From sequence record PP456877.1: 64,000 bases of DNA. One strand, 5' to 3'. The notes beneath the pieces were generated by a model, which worked only from the letters and a program-made list of their open reading frames with translations, had not been told where the DNA came from and ran no database searches. Below, one piece after another: positions 2,913 through 38,585 of this stretch (positions are counted from its first letter, which is position 1; each line of letters starts with the position of its first letter). A program made the position numbers and the translations under genes.

Positions 2913-4427
2913 ATGTTTGAGTTATTGTTGTCTTCTGGACTAACAAATACGCCTATATATTCCGATCCTTATCCAGGTCCTAAAACACTGATAGCTGGGA
3001 CAAGGGAATTAGGTTTGTATGGTGAAACAACATCTTCAGAATTATTTGGTTATGATGATGCAGCTAAATTAGTTAATATGACATTTGGAACAGTAATCAA
3101 TGATGGACAACCATGGTTAAAGTTCTCTAATAAAAATGTTACTTGTTACATACCAAAGAAACCAGCTCGTAAATCAATACAAAAATCACGGCTTAATAAT
3201 GCCGGACTCCGTAATGGTGACTATGAAGTTAGATTTATGGGGAACATTTATAAATTTGGTTTATTAACAATGGCTGGTGCCACATCAGAATGGCAAAGGT
3301 TACTTTATAATGTTCACGTATCTAATTTAAATGGTGCTAACTGGCCTTATAAATTTACAGATAATGACTTAGGTATTAACCAAGCGGTCGCTGGTGGTAT
3401 TAGCACTGATGGTACTACTAACTGGGGAAGAGACCCAGGTAGTGATCCAGTTAATGACCAGCTCTATCGTGGCTACTATGCGATTGATATAACTAGCTCG
3501 TCAAGTAGTGAAACGGGTGCTGCAACCCAAGGTTGGCGTCCAGTGGTTTATGCTAGTGGTACATATCCATTCGTTAAAGATAATGTTATTAAACTTACTG
3601 ATTTTGAAACTGATAACGAAATGGCAGCAGGTGCCCAAATAGGTAACTTAGTCTATTATTACGGTGGTAAGAATAATGCTAATACTGCTCTACGTACATT
3701 GAATTTAGCCACGGGTAAGTTAACAACATTACAACCAACTGGTACACCTATAGCAGTTAAACAATGCTCGGCTGTTGCATTTAATGGTAAAGTATATTTC
3801 TATGGTGGTGAAAATGCCACAGATGGTGTACTCACTAAAGGTATGCAGTGTTATGATCCTGCAACTAATACATGGGAAATAAAATCACCAGGTACGATAG
3901 CTTGTCGGTATGCACGTGGAACTAGTCTTAATGGGTTAATCTACATATTAGGTGCAGCTGATACAACTGCAACAAATAATCGTGGATTTACATTAATGTA
4001 CAATCCAACTACAGATACATATACCAGTGGTGCAGCATTTAATGATACTGGGGTATATACCCAAGATTATTCAGTGAGTGTTTATAATAATAGCGTATGT
4101 GTTATTGGTGGTATGGTTGGTGCCGGTGTTAATACTGGAATCATATCGTACAATCAAACCAACAATAATTGGTCTAAACCAATAACTACAGGTATACCTC
4201 TTGGTGCAGCTATTAATATACGCCCATCTGGTGAACTTTATGTAATCGCTGGTGAAAATCAAAATAATGCACCAATTAAGTATTATGAACCACGATTAGC
4301 ACGATGGATAAATTTAGGTAATTTAGAAACTGGTTTAGTGGATGCAGGTTTTGCCAATACGTTTAATAACGATGGTAAGATTTATGTTCTAAACGGTAAT
4401 CAGAATTTAAAATACCAAATTAGTTAA
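2913..4427 (+). CDS. Kelch-repeat beta-propeller protein with phage-type N-terminal domain
   Basis: Six Kelch-like blades: VYYYGG, VYFYGG, IYILGA, VCVIGG, LYVIAG, IYVLNG. Confidence 0.75.
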   Translation: MFELLLSSGLTNTPIYSDPYPGPKTLIAGTRELGLYGETTSSELFGYDDAAKLVNMTFGTVINDGQPWLKFSNKNVTCYIPKKPARKSIQKSRLNNAGLRNGDYEVRFMGNIYKFGLLTMAGATSEWQRLLYNVHVSNLNGANWPYKFTDNDLGINQAVAGGISTDGTTNWGRDPGSDPVNDQLYRGYYAIDITSSSSSETGAATQGWRPVVYASGTYPFVKDNVIKLTDFETDNEMAAGAQIGNLVYYYGGKNNANTALRTLNLATGKLTTLQPTGTPIAVKQCSAVAFNGKVYFYGGENATDGVLTKGMQCYDPATNTWEIKSPGTIACRYARGTSLNGLIYILGAADTTATNNRGFTLMYNPTTDTYTSGAAFNDTGVYTQDYSVSVYNNSVCVIGGMVGAGVNTGIISYNQTNNNWSKPITTGIPLGAAINIRPSGELYVIAGENQNNAPIKYYEPRLARWINLGNLETGLVDAGFANTFNNDGKIYVLNGNQNLKYQIS

Positions 4428-18179: not shown

Positions 18180-20282
18180 TCAATGATCAGGGGCATATTC
18201 TAATGCAATACCACTACATTCAAGCAGGTGATCAAACATAGCTACTGGACGAGATCCACCAAATGGGATCTTTTCACGATCAACTGCAACTGGTACAGAT
18301 GAAGGTTTTTCTGCTGTTAGCCAAGACTCAATAACCGCAGCATGTGCCAATGGGTTATTAGTTTGGTCTAAGATTTCAGCAGTCGGACCTGGACCAACTG
18401 TACAGTTATATGACCGAGTTTCAGATTCACCGAATGACCGGATAGCTGTTTCTCGACCAGGAGTGCTAGCCCTATCAGCATTGTTTAACTTAGAAGGTAG
18501 ACCAAATGGTTGTGTTTTTACAGATGCTGCTGCTGACCAGTCTTCACCAATCTTTTCTAGTAGCATCATGTAAAGTGGACCCATTAAGACATTGTCTTTA
18601 GTTGTTACCCACTTACCAGCTTGATCTCGATAAGATACCTTTCCATAGTGTGGTCGATACTTATCGCTATTAATTAATTTGTTGACTGCTGCCATTAGAT
18701 CCACTGGATCATCAACTGGTGCGTAGATATATGGGAATCCATCCATTAGTACTGTTTTAACATGTTCTGCTGGATTTGGGTGTTCCATCATTTTACTATG
18801 CATTGTTGGAGCAATGATCTCATAGAAACCTAATAGTTCTTTAAATGCATAATCAACCCATTGGGTGTTACTCATTACACTATTTAGCTGTTGCTGGGTT
18901 GGTTTAGCATGTCGATCTAGTCCAGCTTCAACGCGTAGGCGTTGAGCTAGATCTCGTGCAGCTGCGCCAAAACCATGTTCATAAATTCGACCATAATTTG
19001 AACGACGCATAGTTGAACCACCAAAGATAATTAGATCTGCCCTATTACCATTTTCGTCAATAGGCATATCTTCATCTTCCATTACCTTACAGATAACTCC
19101 CTTCCCTCCATGAAAATCAGTCATCTTAAAAGCACCAGCTGGCATCTTCTGAGCTTTATAGGTTACTTCAACTCGCCATTCATCCAGTGGATCTAGTCGA
19201 TAGAATCGAGATAGTTTACGGACATTATCAGGTTGAGGTAGGAACATCTGTGCAGTTACAATAAGACGTTCAAATTCCTCAGTGATATGTAGATCATCTT
19301 TACGACGTGCTAATAGACCACGATAAATCTTTAATAGTTCTCGATAATAACTGCTAAGATGAGTATGATATTTAACTAATTGTGCATCCATCCCTGTTGG
19401 AGTGGGTGATGGATTTACACGCTCATCTCGCCAGATATCAATATCAATAACCTTCGCACCAGGTGTGCCAATAACAGCTCTATCGAAAGTTCTATCTAGT
19501 GTACGAAGTGCCCTAGGAGTCATCTCGGCAGGAGCTAGATCATCATCATGGTCACGGATGGCGAAGATTACGCCATCTGGTCGGATAACATCACCAATGT
19601 CTGGGAATGGTTTATAGACCTTATCATCGCCATACATGTTTAAGAAGAAAGCTTTCCTACCAGCATTAGCTACAGCCGTGCTATAACTAGTTGGCATCAT
19701 CCTTTTAAGGAAATTCTTATTAGCTACGAATCCATCTTCAATGGTACCAGCGGCAGATAGGAATACAACATTAGCATTAACACCCATCCCTAAAGTACCG
19801 TCTTTCTTAACTGCACCAGACTGTGCAATCACTGTGTCTTTAGAGAACATTTCATTTGGGGCAATGGTTTCCCACACTTCTCGATTCTTTACAAGTTCAT
19901 AACCAAAGTCTTGGTGATGACTCATGTACTCGGGAACATGTAAGACACCAATGGTTTTATATTTGTCAAAATAGTTTTCGTAGATAATAGTTGTTACCGG
20001 GTTAGATCTAATACTGTCTTTACCAATACCCGTTGGATATTTTCTAAGAACATGTAGTACACGACAATCCTCAGGAAAACGAATATCATGTGTATACTTG
20101 GCATACTCTAATTCAGCACCCGTTAGGAAATAACGCGATTCATTTCCATTTACTTCTGGTGCCTGGCCAATATGTGTTACAAACATAGCACCCCGTGCAG
20201 ATGAGGTAGTGCCATACCAAGGATCTAAACCAGTATGCCCTAATAGGGTTAGATCAATTTCACGTTTACCTAGTTCAGCCAT
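18180..20282 (-). CDS. Non-virion RNAP beta C-terminal subunit (phiKZ gp71-73), uninterrupted
   Basis: KMTDFHGGKGVICKV...DMPIDENG...RRSNYG matches the RpoB catalytic region; RSFGESE matches region I. Confidence 0.9.
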   Translation of the reverse strand: MAELGKREIDLTLLGHTGLDPWYGTTSSARGAMFVTHIGQAPEVNGNESRYFLTGAELEYAKYTHDIRFPEDCRVLHVLRKYPTGIGKDSIRSNPVTTIIYENYFDKYKTIGVLHVPEYMSHHQDFGYELVKNREVWETIAPNEMFSKDTVIAQSGAVKKDGTLGMGVNANVVFLSAAGTIEDGFVANKNFLKRMMPTSYSTAVANAGRKAFFLNMYGDDKVYKPFPDIGDVIRPDGVIFAIRDHDDDLAPAEMTPRALRTLDRTFDRAVIGTPGAKVIDIDIWRDERVNPSPTPTGMDAQLVKYHTHLSSYYRELLKIYRGLLARRKDDLHITEEFERLIVTAQMFLPQPDNVRKLSRFYRLDPLDEWRVEVTYKAQKMPAGAFKMTDFHGGKGVICKVMEDEDMPIDENGNRADLIIFGGSTMRRSNYGRIYEHGFGAAARDLAQRLRVEAGLDRHAKPTQQQLNSVMSNTQWVDYAFKELLGFYEIIAPTMHSKMMEHPNPAEHVKTVLMDGFPYIYAPVDDPVDLMAAVNKLINSDKYRPHYGKVSYRDQAGKWVTTKDNVLMGPLYMMLLEKIGEDWSAAASVKTQPFGLPSKLNNADRASTPGRETAIRSFGESETRSYNCTVGPGPTAEILDQTNNPLAHAAVIESWLTAEKPSSVPVAVDREKIPFGGSRPVAMFDHLLECSGIALEYAPDH

Positions 20283-20394
20283 TTTGTTTATCACCATTAA
20301 TTAGACAAGATGCAGTACTACTATATTTCTTATTTGCGCTGTTTTTAGATATAGCCTTTTGTAAGACTTCAATGTCTGGTATCACCAATCTCAT
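20275..20394 (-). CDS. ~39-aa small ORF upstream of the nvRNAP beta gene
   Basis: GGAGGT then MRLVIPDIEVLQKAISKNSANKKYSSTASCLINGDKQNG*. The stop overlaps the next gene's start region; the true start may be the in-frame TTG or GTG. Confidence 0.45.
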   Translation of the reverse strand: MRLVIPDIEVLQKAISKNSANKKYSSTASCLINGDKQNG

Positions 20395-32731: not shown

Positions 32732-32935
32732 TTATTTTGCTTTTAGCCATTCTTCTAATGGCGGTAAATATTTCTCATGTGCCCAGTTAATAATTGTTTC
32801 TACAACAGGACCCTGTAATTCAAGGTTACCTGAGATTTCATGTGGTTCATCAATAGATAGAACCCATGTATGTGGCGCAATGCGTTCAGTTGCTTTAGTT
32901 AGATACACATCAGGCATTAACGTTAAATTAAGTTG
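32732..32935 (-). CDS. nvRNAP beta' N-terminal subunit (gp55/56.1), exon 4
   Basis: QLNLTLMPD...WLKAK*; begins right after the terminal G of intron 3 and continues DFDGD-Q as in RpoC. Confidence 0.9.
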   Translation of the reverse strand, partial: QLNLTLMPDVYLTKATERIAPHTWVLSIDEPHEISGNLELQGPVVETIINWAHEKYLPPLEEWLKAK

Positions 32936-33323
32936 CACTATCTTCGTACAGCATCGTCAGCATCATGTCTAAAAATCATCCATTGGAAGACATGTCGCTG
33001 CTGTACCGTCCACTTAATATCTCCCGACATTAAGTAACTGCTCTAGCTTTCACTAGATGGTGAGACTATATCTTCTTCCCAGAGGGAAGCCTTCTATTTC
33101 GGATCACTTAATCCTACTCTACTCCCTTGTCTGCTTTCGCAGTGGTTTCGATAGTCGTTGAACGTTCTTCCTATATTGCCTTACGGTAATACGTAGAAGC
33201 TTCGCTGCTGATTGTCCAATCCTAACACTTTTCAAACCGTTACATTTTAGCTTTCGCTATCTGCTTTGGTAGTTAGGCTCTAAGGAGGTTCCAGCAATTA
33301 AGAAGGTTAGGAGACCAATTAAA
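32936..33323 (-). mobile_element. Group I intron 3 (388 nt, no ORF)
   Basis: P AAUUGCUGG, Q AAUCAGCAG, R GUUCAACGACUA (33152-33163), S GAAGAUAUAGUC (33064-33075); exon GGAGAU pairs with IGS GUCUCC; ends in G. Confidence 0.92.
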
Positions 33324-33341
33324 ATCTCCGTCAAAATCAGC
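33324..33341 (-). CDS. nvRNAP beta' exon 3: 18-nt micro-exon encoding ADFDGD
   Basis: GCT GAT TTT GAC GGA GAT, between an intron-terminal G and a U-ending 5' splice site. Confidence 0.92.
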
Positions 33342-34714
33342 CGTGTTGTTCAGTATCAGTCGTTAATTGATACCCGCACCATTACGTGCAGCTCTAGCTT
33401 TCACTAGAAGACCAGACTATATCTTCACCCTTCCTTTCGGAGTGGGGTGTCTCCCATTTCGAGTCACTTGACCCTACATCCTATTTCTAGGACCGGTGCA
33501 CCTGATACCGTAATAGTCGTTGAACCTTCTCCTATTCCTAAATGGAATGTTACGGAGCTTGGCTGCTGATTGGCCCTACCTAATCTTTTTCAAACCTTGG
33601 CTTTGTCTTTCGACTCGCAGTGGTAGATTAGTTTAACAGGATATCCCAGCAATTAGAGAGAACTCAACCCAACGATTACTCATTGGGGGAACTAGACTTG
33701 ATTAACTTAATAAGGTATTTATCAAGCACCCCATTCTTTTCAAAGATTGCTCTTCGAACAGTATTCGGATGCTTAATACCGACATCTCTTGCAAAGTGTG
33801 GAATACTCGGATACACTTTGGTAGTGTTCAAGATGGTGTCAGTTACTTCAATTGGAGTACCTTTTCCATTACTAGGTTTTCCAAATGAGGCTTCAATTTC
33901 TTTTTGAGTGTATTTAGGAAAATCTTCAGGATTAGCGGTATATGAGAATACCAAACCATCCATGATTTCCTTACTACCTCTAACTAGATGGTAATAGGCT
34001 TTATTACGTTTAGTACCTAGTGCAAGTTCCATTTCAGCTAAGTTATGAAACACATGTAATGTCTTAGTCTTATAGTCTAAAACATAAACTGTCTTGGTAC
34101 TATCTCGATCAGCAATCTTAGTCTCACCGGTAATAAATTCAAATGTGAATCTATTTCTATACGGCTTAGTCTTATGATCACGTATAATAACCCAAACCGT
34201 ATTTTTATTAACTCCTAATGCCCGAGCAAGTTCACTCATCGAGTAATAAGTAGTCTTTTCACCAGTGGTAACATCAGTTGCAATTACTCGTCTATTTTCT
34301 TTTCTTAATCCATTTTTGTAAGCATGTTCTAAGTTTTCACCACGAGTCATCCACTCCAAATTAGATGGTAGATTATTATGTTTGTTGCCGTCTTTATGAT
34401 TGACTTCATAATTTGGTCCAGGTGATGGACCATGGAATGCAGTACAGATTAGAATATGTGATAATGTAGAATTACTTCTGCCATTATCATTCTTTGCACC
34501 TAGCTTCAGATATGAACCAGTTGAGGTAGGTACTTTGTATAACTTACATATCCTGTTTAACCGCTTATGACGAATTGTTCCTAGGTTACTAGCTTCATAT
34601 GCTGAGTATCCAGGAATATCCCGCCATTAAATTTTAAATGAAGCCGGATCAAAGACGGACACTACTCCGTTTTGTTCCATTGTTTTTACCCTTATTTAGT
34701 TATTTGCTTATCCG
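33342..34714 (-). mobile_element. Group I intron 2 (1373 nt) with HNH ORF in the P1 loop
   Basis: P and Q present, R at 33514-33525, S at 33415-33426; exon CCUAAU pairs with GUUGGG located just after the HNH stop. Confidence 0.92.
33676..34680 (-). pseudogene. NUMOD4-HNH homing endonuclease with in-frame TAA at codon 18
   Basis: MEQNGVVSVFDPASFKI*WRDIPGYSAYEASNLGTIR...HILICTAFHG...VNHKDGNKHNNLPSNLEW followed by three NUMOD1/IENR1-like repeats; TAA at 34627-34629. Confidence 0.85.
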
Positions 34715-34822
34715 ATTAGGCGCTTTCAAGCATAATACTGACATGCTGATAGAATTATCATTAATATCATCTTTTACTTTGGTAATAAAGAACTGCTGTG
34801 TAGATCCACGTTGAAGCGTTGG
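34715..34822 (-). CDS. nvRNAP beta' exon 2 (36 aa)
   Basis: PTLQRGSTQQFFITKVKDDINDNSISMSVLCLKAPN; joins HRN to give HRNPTLQR (RpoC NRAPTLHR). Confidence 0.92.
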
Positions 34823-35172
34823 CAATATCTTCAGTTAGTTCGTTAGGCTAACCCGCACCATTACGTGCAGCTCTAGCTCTCGCTAGACGTTGAGACTATA
34901 TCTTCACCTTTGGCTTTACCCAGTAAGGTGCTTCCCACTTCGAGTCCACTTGGACCCTACGTGCCAATGCACTAGTCGTTGAACTTTATCCATACCTTTC
35001 GGGTTAGGATCTTAGCTGCTGATTGACTCTATTCAGTTATTCTTAAGCATTCATAGAACCTTTCGGAACTATTGTAGCTAACTGACCTAACGAGTTGTTC
35101 CAGCAATTCAAGAAGTTTTGTCGAGCATCATTTCTGATACAAGGAAACCATTTAGTATTGATATACAAATTA
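34823..35172 (-). mobile_element. Group I intron 1 (350 nt, no ORF)
   Basis: P and Q present, R at 34973-34984, S at 34894-34905; exon GAAAU pairs with IGS GUUUC; ends in G. Confidence 0.92.
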
Positions 35173-36309
35173 ATTTCGGTGAAAAGTACAACCCATCCCT
35201 TTATAAGGGGCTGCTTCTGCAATTAGCTCTTTAAATAGATCTGCAATGATTTGGTTATATTGAAGTACATTCTCATATACAAATGAGAATGCTTCACGAG
35301 TTGTCATGTTAAACTTTGCTTTTAGTTTATTGGTTAGATGATACTTTAATAATTGACAACCTACCCCCCAAGGGATATGTAGTTCATCATAATCATGCGG
35401 GTCACTAATAGAAGTGATTACTGCACGTGCCGTAGCGTTGAGACGAGCACCAAACATGTGACGCCGAGCAAGACCAGGCTTTTGAGCAATTCGTGATTTT
35501 GCGTAGATCTCGTAGAACTGGCCATATAGTCTTAGTCCTCGCATAGTCCTATTCTGAGCTTTAATTGGACTAAGTGGTACAGATGATGCATCAATACTAG
35601 CGAAGGTTAAGGTAGCGTCAATTGCTGCTTCAATTGGTTTATCTAAGTAAGTACCAGATGTGGTTGATTCTGCTACGAAACAGAGTTTAGAAGGAACTGG
35701 TAAATATTTAGGGAATAACTTATCTTTATTCTGAGCAACGAATTGAGCGAATTCGGATTTATTATTAGAGATAATATTTGCATCTAGTAGGAATTGGAAG
35801 ATCTCATTGAAGTTATCAATGAAGTGATTTAATCCTCTTTCAAATCCTCGATGCAGTAGCCTATCTACTTTCCTGCGTGTTTCTTTAGAACCAATAGATT
35901 CTACATCGTACCGATAAGAAGTATCAGTTAGATAGGCTAAGAAATCGAATTCTTTAGTTACTAGATATCCGGTTAGCATAATGATTAAACGTGGGTTAAT
36001 TAGGCTACGTACATGTTTTGGTGTACGAACCCACATTGATGGTTCGATAGGGCGGCTAGAAGTATTGACAACTGGAGTATTACAAATATCACAGATTACT
36101 CCGAGTTTATGTGCGTCTTCGATTGCTCGACAATCACAGCTTACACTACTTTCAATTGCTTCTGAATCTTGGAAATGAGAATAGAAATGTCTATCAAATT
36201 CTTCTTTCTCATCTGAGTTACTCGTATTGTAATCATTGGCATAAATTCGTTTACCCGTAAATTGATCATGAACTTCATTATGATCAACAACTTTGGCATA
36301 AAGACCCAT
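35173..36309 (-). CDS. nvRNAP beta' N-terminal subunit (phiKZ gp55), exon 1; start MGLYAK
   Basis: AGGAG RBS; Zn finger CDC...CDIC; ARLNATARAVITS (RpoC region C); ends FHRN at the splice site. Confidence 0.9.
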
Positions 36310-36333
36310 ACCAAACTCCTGTTTATCGATTAA

Positions 36334-36378
36334 CAAAAAAAGGAGATATAAGCGGCCCCCGAAGGAGCCGCTTATATC
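36334..36378 (-). terminator. Strong intrinsic terminator
   Basis: GATATAAGCGGC...GCCGCTTATATC plus a T-tract. Confidence 0.85.
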
Positions 36379-36380
36379 AG

Positions 36381-36700
36381 TTTTTACAATGGACCACCAA
36401 CGGAGCCTGGCCCGAGCCTAGCGTCATCTACAAAGCTTAACCTCCGCTCTTCTTTGTAGCATACCGGCACTAGTCTCATTTACCATCCATTGTAGTTTTT
36501 GATCACACGTTACCTTTTGAGTAACTCCTTTCGGTTAAGTGATCTATCATCCTCGTGTAGTGATAGGTCGACCTAGACTAAGTCCACTAGTCGATTACTT
36601 CACGGAACCTACTCCTAACCGTTATCACCGAAGTGAACCAGGGTCGCAGTATTAGAATCGGGATGTTACTTATTTAACATCCCTATCTACCGAGGTATTT
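36381..36700 (-). ncRNA. Candidate structured RNA downstream of chmA
   Basis: ORF-free, GC-richer than flanking intergenic DNA, at least seven helices including C(UUCG)G and GAAA tetraloops. Confidence 0.6.
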
Positions 36701-36704
36701 CCTA

Positions 36705-38585
36705 TTAGTACCAGGTACCCGGTGCATTATAGGAAGGAGCGCCGTAAGTTTGACCCATGCTGCCAGCCATGCCAACTTGTGCACTACCAGAAACAGCCAT
36801 GTTACCCATACCGGTGTAACCAGCGAAGCGCTGTTGACCGAAGTTGGTAATTAGGTTTTCCATGGTTACAGTTACACCAGCTGCTGCTGCTGCGGCATCC
36901 ATTGCAGTGATGAATTTCGGGTTAAAGGTTAGACGACGAGCACGACCAGTATAGGTAACGTTACCTAGGTACATCTTGTCGAAGCCTTTACTGTTATTCA
37001 TACGACGCACAATGTGGTCATTACCTACCTGAGTAGCATACCAGGTCTTCCACTCTTGGTCATTACCTTCAGACATGTTCATGGCACCTAGAACGTCAAG
37101 ATCACGACGGTCGCTTAGTTCGCCATGCTCATCAGTGTAGTGACCGAGGTCTACTTCATGATGGTTGTCAAAGATAATCGGACCAGCTTCAGCTAGGTTA
37201 TAGAACTGACGGAAATCAGTGCCGTATAGGTTAGTTAGAGCTTGGAAGATCAGGCTAACTGCACGAGCTTGGTTTACGCCACCAGCTGCATCTAGGATGA
37301 CTTGCTCAATAGCTGAGTTGTCGCCCATTGGATCGATATCGATCTGGAATGCAGGGTTCTGGTTAACCATCTTGTTCATTAGCATTACGAAGTTGCTGTC
37401 GTCTGCCATGAATGCTTCGGTGCGAGTTTCAATCGCTTTACCTAGCTCTGAGTAATAACCAAGTGCACCAATATCACGCATCTTGCTAGTAGCGATCTTC
37501 GGCATTAGGGTACGAGCCCATGCCTGGGATGCAGTTGCACGATACGCATTACCGAGTGCGAACAGCCACATTTCTAGAGTCCATGCTTGGATCCAGGATG
37601 CCTTACGAACGTCAGTGATAACGATGTAAGGAGTGAACTGCGGAGGTAGAGCTGCACCAGGTAGAGTTACGCCAAACATACCTTGTTGCTGGCCAGTGGT
37701 CGGAGTCCAATGTAGATCTACGAATAGACTAACTTGGTTTAGCTGACTATCGGTATCATAGAACTCGTTCTCAGGTACGTTGGTTTTCTTACCACGGCTA
37801 GTGGAGATGACCATGTCAGAACGGATCGGATTACCACAGCTATCTTTAACCGGAATACCATTGTAGTCTAGGTTGCAGGTAAGCTGTTCGTTTTCTGCTT
37901 TGATGTGGGTCGCAATAGAGAACGGAGTCTCATTGTTACGACGTGCAATAGCATCTTCACAGATGTTAACAGATTCAACTAGTAGGTTCTTAACAGCTAG
38001 TTCATCTTTGAAGTCGAAGTCAGCATACACTGCACGTGGACCGGCAGATAGTACTTCTAGACCAGGGATGTTGTAACGGTTCCGTAGGAACTCGCCGATC
38101 TTGCTCCAGTATTGAGCAGTGAATACATCACGCGGTAGTACCTTCTCTTCAATGATGTCATCAGTTAGACCATTGTTGATTTTGTGGGTACGGGGACGGA
38201 TGCGAGTACCAGGTAGGTTATCGAGTACTAGAGTACGAACGAATGCCTTCATGGAACCATTGATATCTTTAGCTAGTTTAACAATGAGTAGACCAGCCAT
38301 ACCCACTTGTTGTGCATCGCGATCGAAACGATGGATATCGAAGTCATCAGGTAGGTCCTGATGGCGGATTGCTTCTTCTTTTACTTTAGTGAATACTTGT
38401 AGGGCATCTGCTGAACGAGCATCAGAGCCATCTAGCCGACCAGAGCGACGCATTAGATGGTTAATGCCAGTAGTGGACCCAGGTGCGCCAGCCGGACGTT
38501 GAGCTTGACGTTGTGCAGTGGGTTGCGGAGCCGGAGCGGTAGCTTGAGTTTGAACGGTGCCGATTTCGTTTTCGTTAACAGCCAT
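36705..38585 (-). CDS. chmA: Chimallin, major phage-nucleus shell protein (phiKZ gp54)
   Basis: Recognised sequence and size (626 aa); position upstream of nvRNAP beta'; strong high-expression codon bias. Confidence 0.9.

Follow-up and report, generated by a model that had tools for sequence, protein, structure and literature searches.

Where does the Pseudomonas phage vB_Pae3705-KEN49 (KEN49) encode the active site of its non-virion RNA polymerase (nvRNAP)? In the GenBank record of this jumbo phage of the Phikzvirus group (PP456877.1), zero proteins carry a polymerase active site. The phiKZ-type nvRNAP transcribes middle and late genes, and its catalytic beta'-N subunit is gp55 in phiKZ. The sequence analyzed here is a 64-kb stretch of the KEN49 record (hereafter the window), in which the homologue of gp55 occupies positions 36309-32732 on the minus strand and is annotated in fragments only, with a 379-aa piece corresponding to exon 1 named 'RNA polymerase beta subunit' alongside short 'hypothetical proteins'. 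We consider it highly probable that this gene is divided into four exons by three adjoining group I introns, that the arrangement is of mosaic origin, and that three splicing reactions are needed to yield an active polymerase. We point out that the KEN49 arrangement is known from one GenBank assembly and that a literature search on KEN49 returned nothing relevant.

Four exons and a collinear product

Exon identity was taken from a sequence search of the PDB, since Pfam gave no match for KEN49 exons 1, 2 or 4 taken singly. Exon 1 (36309-35173, minus strand) encodes amino acids 1-379, ends in ...FHRN, and is 100% identical to residues 21-399 of 7OGP_A, the solved phiKZ gp55 chain. Exon 2 (34822-34715, minus strand, 108 nt) encodes amino acids 380-415 (PTLQRG...LKAPN), corresponding to residues 400-435 with 100% identity. 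It supplies the catalytic double-psi beta-barrel with its first strands, the exon's protein sequence is identical across 11 relatives, and no ORF covers the exon. Exon 3 is a micro-exon of 18 nt (33341-33324, minus strand; GCTGATTTTGACGGAGAT) that encodes ADFDGD, amino acids 416-421, which holds the Mg-binding aspartates and is bordered on both sides by phase 0 introns. Exon 4 (32935-32732, minus strand) encodes amino acids 422-488 (QLNLTLMPD...WLKAK) and the stop codon, is 100% identical to residues 442-508 of 7OGP_A, and is the equivalent of phiKZ gp56.1; a GTG-initiated ORF spans it.

When joined, the four exons form an open frame of 1467 nt encoding a protein of 488 aa and 55.7 kDa (...FHRN/PTLQRG...KAPN/ADFDGD/QLNL...), and the peptides spanning its exon junctions are KAPNADFDGDQLNL. 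A sequence-only reading of this DNA had predicted both the 488-aa spliced product and the existence of ADFDGD as a free-standing exon, and each prediction holds: the joined product is collinear with 7OGP_A, and the gap left between the matches of exon 2 and exon 4 (residues 436-441) comprises six residues, the size of the micro-exon. DFDGD occupies residues 417-421 of the joined KEN49 product, and the motif is numbered 417-DFDGD-421 in the phiKZ gp55 structure paper (PMC8287921). The spliced size is equal to that of native phiKZ gp55, 56 kDa (PMC4666361). With its collinearity to gp55 and a DxDGD motif within the double-psi beta-barrel, the product has the features of a phiKZ-type beta'-N subunit.

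All three introns are phase 0 and fall within 42 codons of the double-psi beta-barrel, after N379, N415 and D421. Each of them would halt translation of the unspliced RNA, with a TAA directly after exon 1 (the first codon of intron 1) and further in-frame stops 4 codons into intron 2 and 16 codons into intron 3. Between KEN49 and its relatives the exon protein sequence is 100% conserved and nucleotide changes are synonymous only, indicating purifying selection on the spliced reading frame.

Three group I introns and their boundaries

The sequence-only reading had also claimed three complete group I introns in this gene, and had named an Infernal-type scan beforehand as a check. Searching the window with Rfam model RF00028 (gathering score 50) gave exactly three matches, one falling in each of the claimed intervals, all on the minus strand and each extending over model positions 1-253. 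Their scores are at least as high as those obtained for the corresponding introns of phiKZ, KTN4, fnug and PA7. In every intron the core elements P, Q, R and S occur once each, a U ends the 5' exon, and a G (omega-G) ends the intron.

Intron 1 (35172-34823, minus strand, 350 nt) matches RF00028 at 35170-34871 (89.1 bits, E 2e-21), with P at 35108-35098, Q at 35024-35015, R at 34984-34973, S at 34904-34894 and the terminal G at 34823. Its guide GGUUUCC (35149-35143) pairs with exon GAAAU, placing a U.G at the splice site, and the P1 hairpin is present in the minimum free energy (MFE) fold. The P2 of this intron is GAAA-capped. Intron 3 (33323-32936, minus strand, 388 nt) matches at 33344-33041 (76.1 bits), with P at 33299-33289, Q at 33213-33204, R at 33163-33152, S at 33074-33064 and the terminal G at 32936. 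Its guide GGUCUCC (33316-33310) pairs with exon GGAGAU, again with a U.G pair, and its P1 hairpin likewise appears in the MFE fold (z = -2.4).

Intron 2 (34714-33342, minus strand, 1373 nt) is the longest of the three, and its ribozyme core lies 3' of an endonuclease ORF. The match to RF00028 is at 33713-33392 (76.1 bits), with P at 33654-33644, Q at 33571-33562, R at 33525-33514, S at 33425-33415 and the terminal G at 33342. A putative guide, GUUGGG (33673-33668), could pair with exon CCUAAU as P1. This assignment is weaker than those for introns 1 and 3, since it comes from inspection by eye and consists of 6 bp formed across approximately 1 kb, a match for which the chance expectation is roughly 1 in 10.

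In an alignment of the cores of 11 introns at the three sites, RNAalifold predicted 55 consensus pairs, of which 29 keep pairing through two-sided changes, and the helices with such compensatory changes include ones assigned by inspection to P3, P6 and P8. The P10 pairings of the KEN49 introns are weak, at 1 to 3 bp. The core scores, the U.G-containing P1 (weaker in intron 2), the omega-G and the collinear frame together identify all three as group I introns of the RF00028 family. IA2 is the usual group I subgroup in phages.

The exact junctions proposed earlier are confirmed by alleles in which the corresponding site is empty, namely phiKZ, KEN51, 30-1 and PA7 for site 1, fnug and PA7 for site 2, and phiKZ, KTN4 and others for site 3. 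These alleles join the flanks exactly at the KEN49 boundaries, and at none of the six could the junction be shifted by even one base, so that all are fixed and unambiguous. A twintron was considered for introns 2 and 3 and rejected: 18 coding bases separate the two, and among relatives these same 18 bases are continuous with exon 2 in fnug and PA7, and with exon 4 in phiKZ and others.

Distribution, endonuclease decay and probable mosaic origin

Each KEN49 intron occurs in relatives, singly or in pairs. Site 1 is filled in 17 phages, and the remaining 29 Pseudomonas phage records have it empty. Sites 1 and 2 are both filled in KTN4, SL2, Churi and KEN19, sites 1 and 3 in fnug and OMKO1, and phiKZ has intron 2 only, as expected from the earlier suggestion that the arrangement is absent from phiKZ. 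The KEN49 intron 2 shares 95.6% identity with the phiKZ intron and 97.4% with the intron of KEN51. A survey of intron presence and absence across Phikzvirus genomes had also been proposed, and a probe across the micro-exon (end of intron 2, exon 3, start of intron 3) was fully covered only in KEN49 among 49 matching records; its intron 2 half was matched in 39 of these and its intron 3 half in nine. Introns 2 and 3 are thus mutually exclusive in 48 of the 49 records, with KEN49 the sole exception, and among approximately 50 related phage records KEN49 alone has introns flanking ADFDGD, the others carrying intron 2 or intron 3. The INPHARED phage set was the informative collection for this survey. 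Contigs of IMG/VR and the JGI metagenomes yielded no intron 2-exon 3-intron 3 junction; control patterns showed IMG/VR to contain almost no Phikzvirus, with a single PA7 contig only, and hence these metagenome nulls carry little weight. A fourth insertion site, in exon 4, was considered because a probe for the end of this exon failed in KEN51, KEN19, Churi, PA7 and T2P. It was rejected, as these phages have a divergent last ~15 nt and ~390 nt of extra DNA 3' of the gene; this DNA gave no Rfam match, does not occur in KEN49, and is no intron of the gp55-like gene.

All three introns have lost an intact endonuclease gene. Intron 2 carries a homologue of phiKZ gp56 with HNH and NUMOD domains (34680-33676, minus strand), and this gene is interrupted at codon 18 (34629-34627), which is an in-frame TAA; phiKZ, KTN4 and KEN51 have GAA there. 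A domain search of the part after the stop detected NUMOD1 (7e-30), HNH_3 (4.5e-14) and NUMOD4 (5.5e-05). The domains of an I-HmuI-like HNH/NUMOD homing endonuclease are therefore present in an interrupted gene, of which GenBank calls only a 224-aa C-terminal piece. Intron 1 is without an endonuclease gene, and its bases 24-350 share 99.7% identity with the 3' 327 nt of the KTN4/fnug intron, which at this site is 1244 nt long and HNH-carrying. Likewise, intron 3 is 97% identical to bases 1-349 plus 1480-1524 of the 1524-nt fnug/PA7 intron, and retains an HNH remnant at 32993-32976 in which the start codon and 4 further codons are fused to the last codons of the gene. The HNH ORFs of 273 aa and 366-386 aa found in KTN4, fnug, PA7 and Brmt are absent from KEN49 introns 1 and 3. 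Introns 1 and 3 are deletion derivatives, and no KEN49 intron is now self-mobile, since none retains the intact endonuclease ORF of a homing-competent group I intron.

It is unlikely, in our judgment, that the triple-intron allele is an evolved state and not only selfish clutter. An inserted intron splits the target site of an endonuclease, and KEN49 keeps three inserts without the cost of any endonuclease. A functional role for real introns, either through splicing efficiency or skipping that gates the early-to-middle switch, or through filled sites that protect the polymerase gene, can be proposed, and we regard it as quite improbable. The lengths of exons 2 and 3 are divisible by 3 and every intron is phase 0, which would keep any skipped product in frame; ligation of exon 2 to exon 4, for example, would remove ADFDGD without shifting the frame. 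Among phage group I introns, the skipping of exons has been documented for Twort orf142 and for SIOphi, where it affects 47% of transcripts (PMC11878797). Protection would be directed against three homing endonuclease families of co-infecting relatives, and the HNH endonuclease of the PhiPA3 intron does cripple phiKZ by nicking an intron-less RNAP gene (PMC11620839). However, selfish accumulation together with endonuclease decay suffices for every feature, and nothing in the sequence demands a function. The presence of the arrangement in one of approximately 50 genomes also argues against a strong advantage, and HNH enzymes of the intron type can cut intron-containing alleles too. Were the allele nevertheless an evolved state, the three filled sites would give an essential polymerase gene immunity to three circulating HNH families, output of active polymerase would be tied to ordered and complete splicing, and skipped mRNAs would yield subunits without an active site that could tune or poison the early-to-middle switch. 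With all target sites filled and all weapons discarded, KEN49 offers a direct test of introns as immunity, following the PhiPA3 work (PMC11620839).

In the preferred reading, KEN49 is a mosaic phage that collected all three introns at homing sites used in other phiKZ-like phages. Sites 2 and 3 lie 18 bp apart, and it is the filling of both that leaves ADFDGD as a stand-alone exon. The locus is a segment-wise mosaic in which each segment is closest to another relative, and the micro-exon itself is chimeric. Exon 2 and the 5' two-thirds of the micro-exon carry synonymous variants of intron 2 alleles (T3 and T9 within the micro-exon), A15 is as in intron 3 alleles, and the 3' GGAGAT, which pairs with the intron 3 guide, is of the intron 3 allele type. 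Exon 4 is also mosaic, its first 6 nt (CAACTT) being of the intron 3 allele type and the rest phiKZ/KTN4/SL2-like. The combination of intron 3-type variants at both flanks with intron 2-type variants upstream suggests that the likeliest origin is entry of an intron 3 allele into an intron 2 gene by homing or recombination at the DNA level. Upstream, the crossover would have occurred within a stretch of 5 identical nt (GACGG); downstream, the conversion tract would measure 6 to 33 nt. Reverse splicing was rejected as the main route for intron 3. The flanking exon bases are of donor type on both sides (A at -4 and CAACTT at positions +1 to +6), a pattern accounted for by DNA-level co-conversion but not by insertion of RNA. 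The exclusion between introns 2 and 3, together with a recombinant joined within five shared bases, constitutes a record of intron competition for adjacent sites.

An assembly chimera we hold to be very improbable; in this case the lysate would have contained one phiKZ-like phage with intron 2 and a second with introns 1 and 3, the assembler would have joined them, and the micro-exon would exist in no real genome. In favor of this rival, the arrangement is unique to one record whose segments are each nearest a different relative, and different combinations of alleles are present in the sister isolates KEN19 and KEN51, which come from the same submitters. At the join, however, the two allele types share only the 5 consecutive bases GACGG, far under the k-mer or read overlap of an assembler, and the join is in frame and leaves the intron 3 P1 intact. 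Moreover, the exact endonuclease gene deletion of intron 3 and the nonsense codon of intron 2 were found in none of the 14 relatives' loci compared, indicating that the locus was not assembled from those 14 genomes.

Predicted splicing requirement and known systems

With the locus taken as a real recombinant, its introns are predicted from their sequences to splice in vivo. The in-frame stops in unspliced RNA and the single gene copy in the window, where no second gp55-like gene was found, imply a need for three ribozyme reactions: an active polymerase, and hence middle and late transcription, would require three self-splicing reactions on one pre-mRNA, and the two reactions around the micro-exon would each act on a different end of its 18 nt. 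The sequence-only reading had made late transcription dependent on three ribozyme reactions. The stops and the single copy in the window favor that dependence, but its scope was drawn too narrowly, as middle genes would be affected too. The 56-kDa size of native phiKZ gp55 (PMC4666361) lends indirect support to splicing of intron 2 only. For phiKZ, Putzeys et al. 2024 obtained no spliced long reads (ONT) for predicted introns under the conditions used (PMC10914365), which leaves the single-intron case without direct cDNA support in the literature found. The idea that at least one intron is splicing-dead, leaving a pseudogene or separate small polypeptides with polymerase function supplied from elsewhere, draws on the fragmentary GenBank annotation and the GTG-initiated ORF over exon 4, but is scarcely credible given that six residues are impossible as a separate polypeptide, that exon 2 has no ORF, that the ribozymes score equal to those of functional relatives, that the spliced frame is under purifying selection with 100% conserved exon protein, that the window holds no other gp55-like gene, and that KEN49 forms plaques on MRSN 3705, the strain on which it was isolated according to its record.

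The six residues by which a multisubunit RNA polymerase holds its catalytic magnesium form an 18-base island of DNA between two ribozymes, the tightest packing of self-splicing introns around a phage enzyme active site among those we could document. The locus provides a natural substrate for studying two ribozymes acting on one very short exon, their splicing order and the rate of exon skipping. It also illustrates how annotation pipelines miss such a split gene.

Phage genes with several introns have been described before, as have organellar mini-exons; the triple combination is new among sequenced relatives. The closest system is phiKZ gp55/gp56/gp56.1, which is the same gene with the same 488-aa mature protein (7OGP) and shares the intron 2 site after N415. 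In phiKZ, however, the endonuclease is intact (334 aa) and ADFDGD belongs to the downstream exon, whereas in KEN49 codon 18 of the endonuclease gene is a stop and additional introns are inserted at N379 and D421. The two-intron Phikzvirus alleles have the same three homing sites, intron families and HNH-type endonucleases as KEN49, but none has sites 2 and 3 both filled, and hence none has the 18-nt exon. The gp210 intron of PhiPA3, in the virion RNAP beta gene, resembles the KEN49 introns in being a group I intron that adjoins conserved catalytic aspartates of a jumbo-phage multisubunit RNAP. The PhiPA3 intron is single, lies in another subunit of another polymerase, and carries an active HNH nicking endonuclease that functions in phage-phage competition (PMC11620839).

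Other systems share the stacking of introns. Staphylococcus phage Twort orf142 is described as a single gene with three group I introns and exon skipping (Landthaler and Shub 1999, as cited in PMC11878797 and PMC11620839); according to these accounts it is a structural (tail tube) gene and not an enzyme active site. In Bastillevirinae, the DNA polymerase, terminase and ribonucleotide reductase genes contain two or three group I introns, and in phiNIT1 rNDPL a small exon between two introns was detected by cDNA sequencing only, with exon skipping also seen (PMC11878797). These resemble KEN49 in having stacked introns in core enzyme genes, theirs being IA-type and many with HNH genes, but they belong to another phage family and other genes, and no metal-binding motif is reported there as an isolated exon (PMC11878797). 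Mitochondrial mini-exons (PMC10352661) likewise consist of a few codons encoding conserved residues, with self-splicing group I/II introns on both sides, and are routinely missed by annotation; the placozoan cox1 gene even includes a 1-bp exon (PMC5436844). These organellar exons depend on protein-assisted splicing, whereas the KEN49 micro-exon belongs to a virulent phage gene whose expression is due within minutes.

Three introns and the protein they interrupt

The 3.65-kb region under study matches Pseudomonas phage vB_Pae3705-KEN49 (hereafter KEN49; PP456877.1, genus Phikzvirus; record coordinate = window coordinate + 216231) at 100% identity; the phage was obtained from sewage using P. aeruginosa MRSN 3705. 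The chimallin gene (36705-38585; Pfam Chimallin_Phikzvirus, 1121 bits) lies upstream of the gp55 homologue on the same strand, which identifies the locus as the counterpart of phiKZ gp54-gp55-gp56-gp56.1. The gene product is the N-terminal beta' piece of the non-virion RNA polymerase (nvRNAP) and bears the catalytic double-psi beta-barrel (PMC4666361, PMC8287921).

The sequence-only reading had placed three group I introns in this gene and suggested a covariance-model scan. When the entire window was scanned with Rfam at gathering thresholds, exactly three matches were obtained, all to Intron_gpI, on the minus strand and spanning the model from end to end: 35170-34871 (89.1 bits, E = 2e-21) for intron 1 (35172-34823, 350 nt), 33713-33392 (76.1 bits) for intron 2 (34714-33342, 1373 nt) and 33344-33041 (76.1 bits) for intron 3 (33323-32936, 388 nt). 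The exons measure 1137 (36309-35173), 108 (34822-34715), 18 (33341-33324) and 204 nt (32935-32732). Each intron contains one copy of each classical core element (AAUUGCUGGRA, AAUCAGCAGC, GUUCAACGACUA and AAGAUAUAGUC), and, as had been noted, U is the last base of each 5' exon and G the last base of each intron. In relatives with an empty site the flanks meet precisely at the KEN49 junctions, and no base can be slid at any of the six, so that the boundaries do not depend on motif reading alone. The feature is real and was read correctly.

Joining the exons gives the anticipated 488-codon open frame (1467 nt), reading ...FHRN/PTLQRG...KAPN/ADFDGD/QLNL... across the junctions. The phiKZ protein in PDB 7OGP (chain A, named PHIKZ055 / PHIKZ056.1; 508 aa, the first 20 preceding the Met and presumably a tag) is 100% identical to exon 1 over residues 21-399, to exon 2 over 400-435 and to exon 4 over 442-508. 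The stretch left unmatched is exactly six residues, which fits the claim that ADFDGD forms a stand-alone 18-nt exon between introns 2 and 3. The predicted spliced protein is 55.7 kDa with DFDGD at 417-421; native gp55 from phiKZ-infected cells is 56 kDa (PMC4666361), and the cryo-EM numbering is likewise 417-DFDGD-421 (PMC8287921). Unspliced RNA could not yield this protein, since intron 1 opens with an in-frame TAA and further in-frame stops follow after 4 codons of intron 2 and 16 of intron 3.

Distribution, probable origin and endonuclease decay

Loci were taken from 14 other phages, and junction probes were run on a collection of 50,697 phage records. At site 1 (after N379) the KEN49-type intron is found in KEN49, SL2, KTN4, fnug, OMKO1, ANB1 and fMGyn-Pae01 and a variant intron in ten other phages; the site is empty in the remaining 29 Pseudomonas phage records, including phiKZ. 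Sites 2 (after N415) and 3 (after D421) were probed with a 96-nt sequence in which the micro-exon is flanked by the terminal 39 nt of intron 2 and the initial 39 nt of intron 3. Among the 49 records matched, 39 have only the intron-2 half and nine only the intron-3 half (among them PA7, fnug, OMKO1, Brmt, W10-2 and the Pawinskivirus phages PS119XW and phiLBG22), and KEN49 alone matches end to end. A probe of joined flanks found both sites empty only in other genera (PhiPA3, PA1C, BRkr, phiHQ, HHBS36_1, HPP-Temi and D6). Thus, in the records probed, every phiKZ-like phage has intron 2 or intron 3, both occur only in KEN49, and ADFDGD is a separate exon there alone, in agreement with the earlier remark that the arrangement is not known from phiKZ. 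Intron 3 is 93% identical to that of PS119XW (3519-3880 of its locus), whereas the flanking exons are merely 66-76% identical; the comparison points to a recent movement of this intron between Phikzvirus and Pawinskivirus.

Exon synonymous variants travel with the introns. Intron-2 alleles combine an exon 2 end ...GCGCCTAAT, a micro-exon region GCTGATTTTGACGGCGAT or close variants and an exon 4 start CAATTG..., and intron-3 alleles have ...GCTCCAAAC, GCAGATTTCGACGGAGAT and CAACTT..., respectively. KEN49 joins an intron-2-type exon 2 end to the micro-exon GCTGATTTTGACGGAGAT, whose positions 3 and 9 follow the intron-2 alleles and whose position 15 follows the intron-3 alleles, and to an exon 4 that starts CAACTT and is phiKZ/KTN4/SL2-like from about base 34. 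A15 pairs with U of the intron 3 guide, a position at which the C of the intron-less type would not pair. These patterns are most simply read as the entry of an intron-3 allele, by homing or recombination, into a gene already holding intron 2, with the upstream exchange point falling within five shared bases, GACGG, and a downstream conversion tract of 6 to 33 nt. Had the upstream tract been longer, intron 2 would have been erased, which explains the rarity of the double state. Reverse splicing of intron 3 would leave exon bases unchanged and is therefore ranked lower. An assembly chimera could also juxtapose the two allele types, but is unlikely: these have just five consecutive bases in common at the join, and the KEN49 intron 3 deletion and intron 2 nonsense codon occur in none of the 14 relatives' loci. 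The entire KEN49 locus is a mosaic, with intron 1 KTN4/fnug-like (99.7%), intron 2 KEN51-like in its 5' part and ORF and phiKZ/KTN4-like in its ribozyme, and intron 3 fnug/PA7-like (97%).

Relatives have, at all three sites, genes of HNH type whose products contain HNH_3 and NUMOD domains. KEN49 intron 1 lacks the ~890-nt segment bearing the 273-aa ORF of KTN4 and fnug; in intron 3, all that is left of the fnug/PA7/Brmt ORF is the start codon and four codons, joined directly to its final codons; and the intron-2 ORF is full length with TAA at codon 18 in place of the GAA of phiKZ, KTN4 and KEN51. PS119XW intron 3 has an independent, larger endonuclease-gene deletion. With all three genes lost or broken, the KEN49 introns are passengers unable to promote their own spread. 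An adaptive role, as immunity to three endonuclease families or as a splicing-gated transcription switch, is not required by the data and seems to us improbable. The KEN49 ribozymes score as high in Rfam as those of phages dependent on these introns.

Intron RNA anatomy and the predicted splicing requirement

The guide of intron 1 (GGUUUCC, 35149-35143, minus strand) pairs with exon GAAAU and that of intron 3 (GGUCUCC, 33316-33310, minus strand) with exon GGAGAU; each of these P1 hairpins, with its U.G pair at the point of cleavage, is seen in minimum-energy folds of short natural segments. Intron 2 is laid out as 5' splice site, endonuclease ORF and ribozyme. Its putative guide (GUUGGG, 33673-33668, minus strand), 13 nt before P3, is the sole well-placed complement to exon CCUAAU, and we infer that this pairing forms P1. 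The guide base facing the splice-site U is G in KEN49 (region 33674-33667), phiKZ and KTN4, and A, predicting U-A, in KEN51, 30-1, SL2, KEN19, Churi and T2P (loci L004:~3325-3335, L006, L007, L009, L011 and L012). A U.G wobble at the group I 5' splice site is near-universal; either U-A is tolerated in these six relatives or the intron 2 P1 assignment is incomplete.

RNAalifold predicted 55 consensus pairs in an alignment of 11 cores from three sites and six phages, 29 of which survive changes of both partner bases; among these are pairs in helices assigned by inspection to P3, P6 and P8. Likewise, two double changes in intron 1 P2 between KEN49 and KEN19 preserve pairing. The introns are related (66-84% identity over cores) and are distinct ribozymes, not copies of each other. 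With cores intact, an exon-encoded protein perfectly conserved through synonymous changes only, and six residues not suppliable as a separate piece, a pseudogene or split protein is contradicted. In the 3' region of intron 1, ~40 nt (~34830-34869) are 90% identical to sequences found both in E. coli phages of the Vequintavirinae (V5, FV3, FFH2 and others) and in a set of 'Campylobacter phage' records, and intron 2 has a similar stretch; a group I intron module seems common to unrelated phage families.

The nvRNAP transcribes middle and late genes (PMC10914365, PMC4666361), and three ribozyme reactions on one pre-mRNA would be needed before its catalytic subunit could be made. At the micro-exon the two ribozymes would work from different ends of the 18 nt, with its six 3'-terminal bases entering intron 3 P1 and its first bases serving as the intron 2 3' exon, and removal of introns 2 and 3 in either order would leave a normal substrate for the other. 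Simultaneous docking of two ~350-nt cores on 18 nt seems unlikely, and sequential splicing would thus be expected. Because every intron lies in phase 0 and the lengths of exons 2 and 3 are divisible by three, any exon-skipped product would keep frame and encode a subunit without its active site; skipping of exons has been reported with phage group I introns (PMC11878797). Splicing of predicted phiKZ introns went undetected in one long-read study (PMC10914365), yet the native size of gp55 argues that intron 2 is removed in phiKZ.

Precedents and the surrounding locus

phiKZ gp55 has a single intron, in contrast to the three in KEN49, and two-intron alleles are already known among Phikzvirus relatives. 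Three-intron phage genes include Twort orf142 and Bastillevirinae polymerase and terminase genes (PMC11878797, PMC11620839); PhiPA3 gp210 has an intron adjoining the catalytic aspartates of a jumbo-phage RNAP (PMC11620839), and mini-exons between organellar introns are known (PMC10352661, PMC5436844). The pieces of the arrangement are therefore known and the combination is not; a literature search found no paper describing introns 2 and 3 together. What is new in KEN49 is the catalytic motif isolated on its own exon, the recombinant nature of that exon, the broken mutual exclusion of introns 2 and 3, and the complete loss of endonuclease function. The locus offers good experimental leverage, and is not yet a new principle.

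In the GenBank record (window 32732-36309), exon 1 is named a 379-aa 'RNA polymerase beta subunit' and the remainder is filled, on the two strands together, by some ten short 'hypothetical proteins'; there the polymerase active site is in no annotated protein and no intron is annotated. The spacer after the chimallin gene (36310-36704, ~390 nt) is non-coding, 99.8% identical to phiKZ and without an Rfam match; it contains a terminator-like element (36334-36373, minus strand), a strong hairpin rich in GC with a T run after it, ending ~25 nt before the gp55 start codon. In KEN51, KEN19, Churi, PA7 and W10-2 (L004:3895-4285, L007, L009:4194-4584, L010 and L014) the last ~15 nt of the gp55 homologue are divergent and an additional ~390 nt, which neither KEN49 nor phiKZ has and which gave no group I match, lie between exon 4 and the gp57 homologue; a 189-nt ORF is annotated there in some records. 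The nvRNAP beta gene (phiKZ gp71-73 homologue; 18180-20297, minus strand) is a single uninterrupted 705-aa ORF collinear with 7OGP chain C. The site at which an intron/endonuclease is predicted in phiKZ (gp72) is thus empty in KEN49, yet its beta' gene has three introns.
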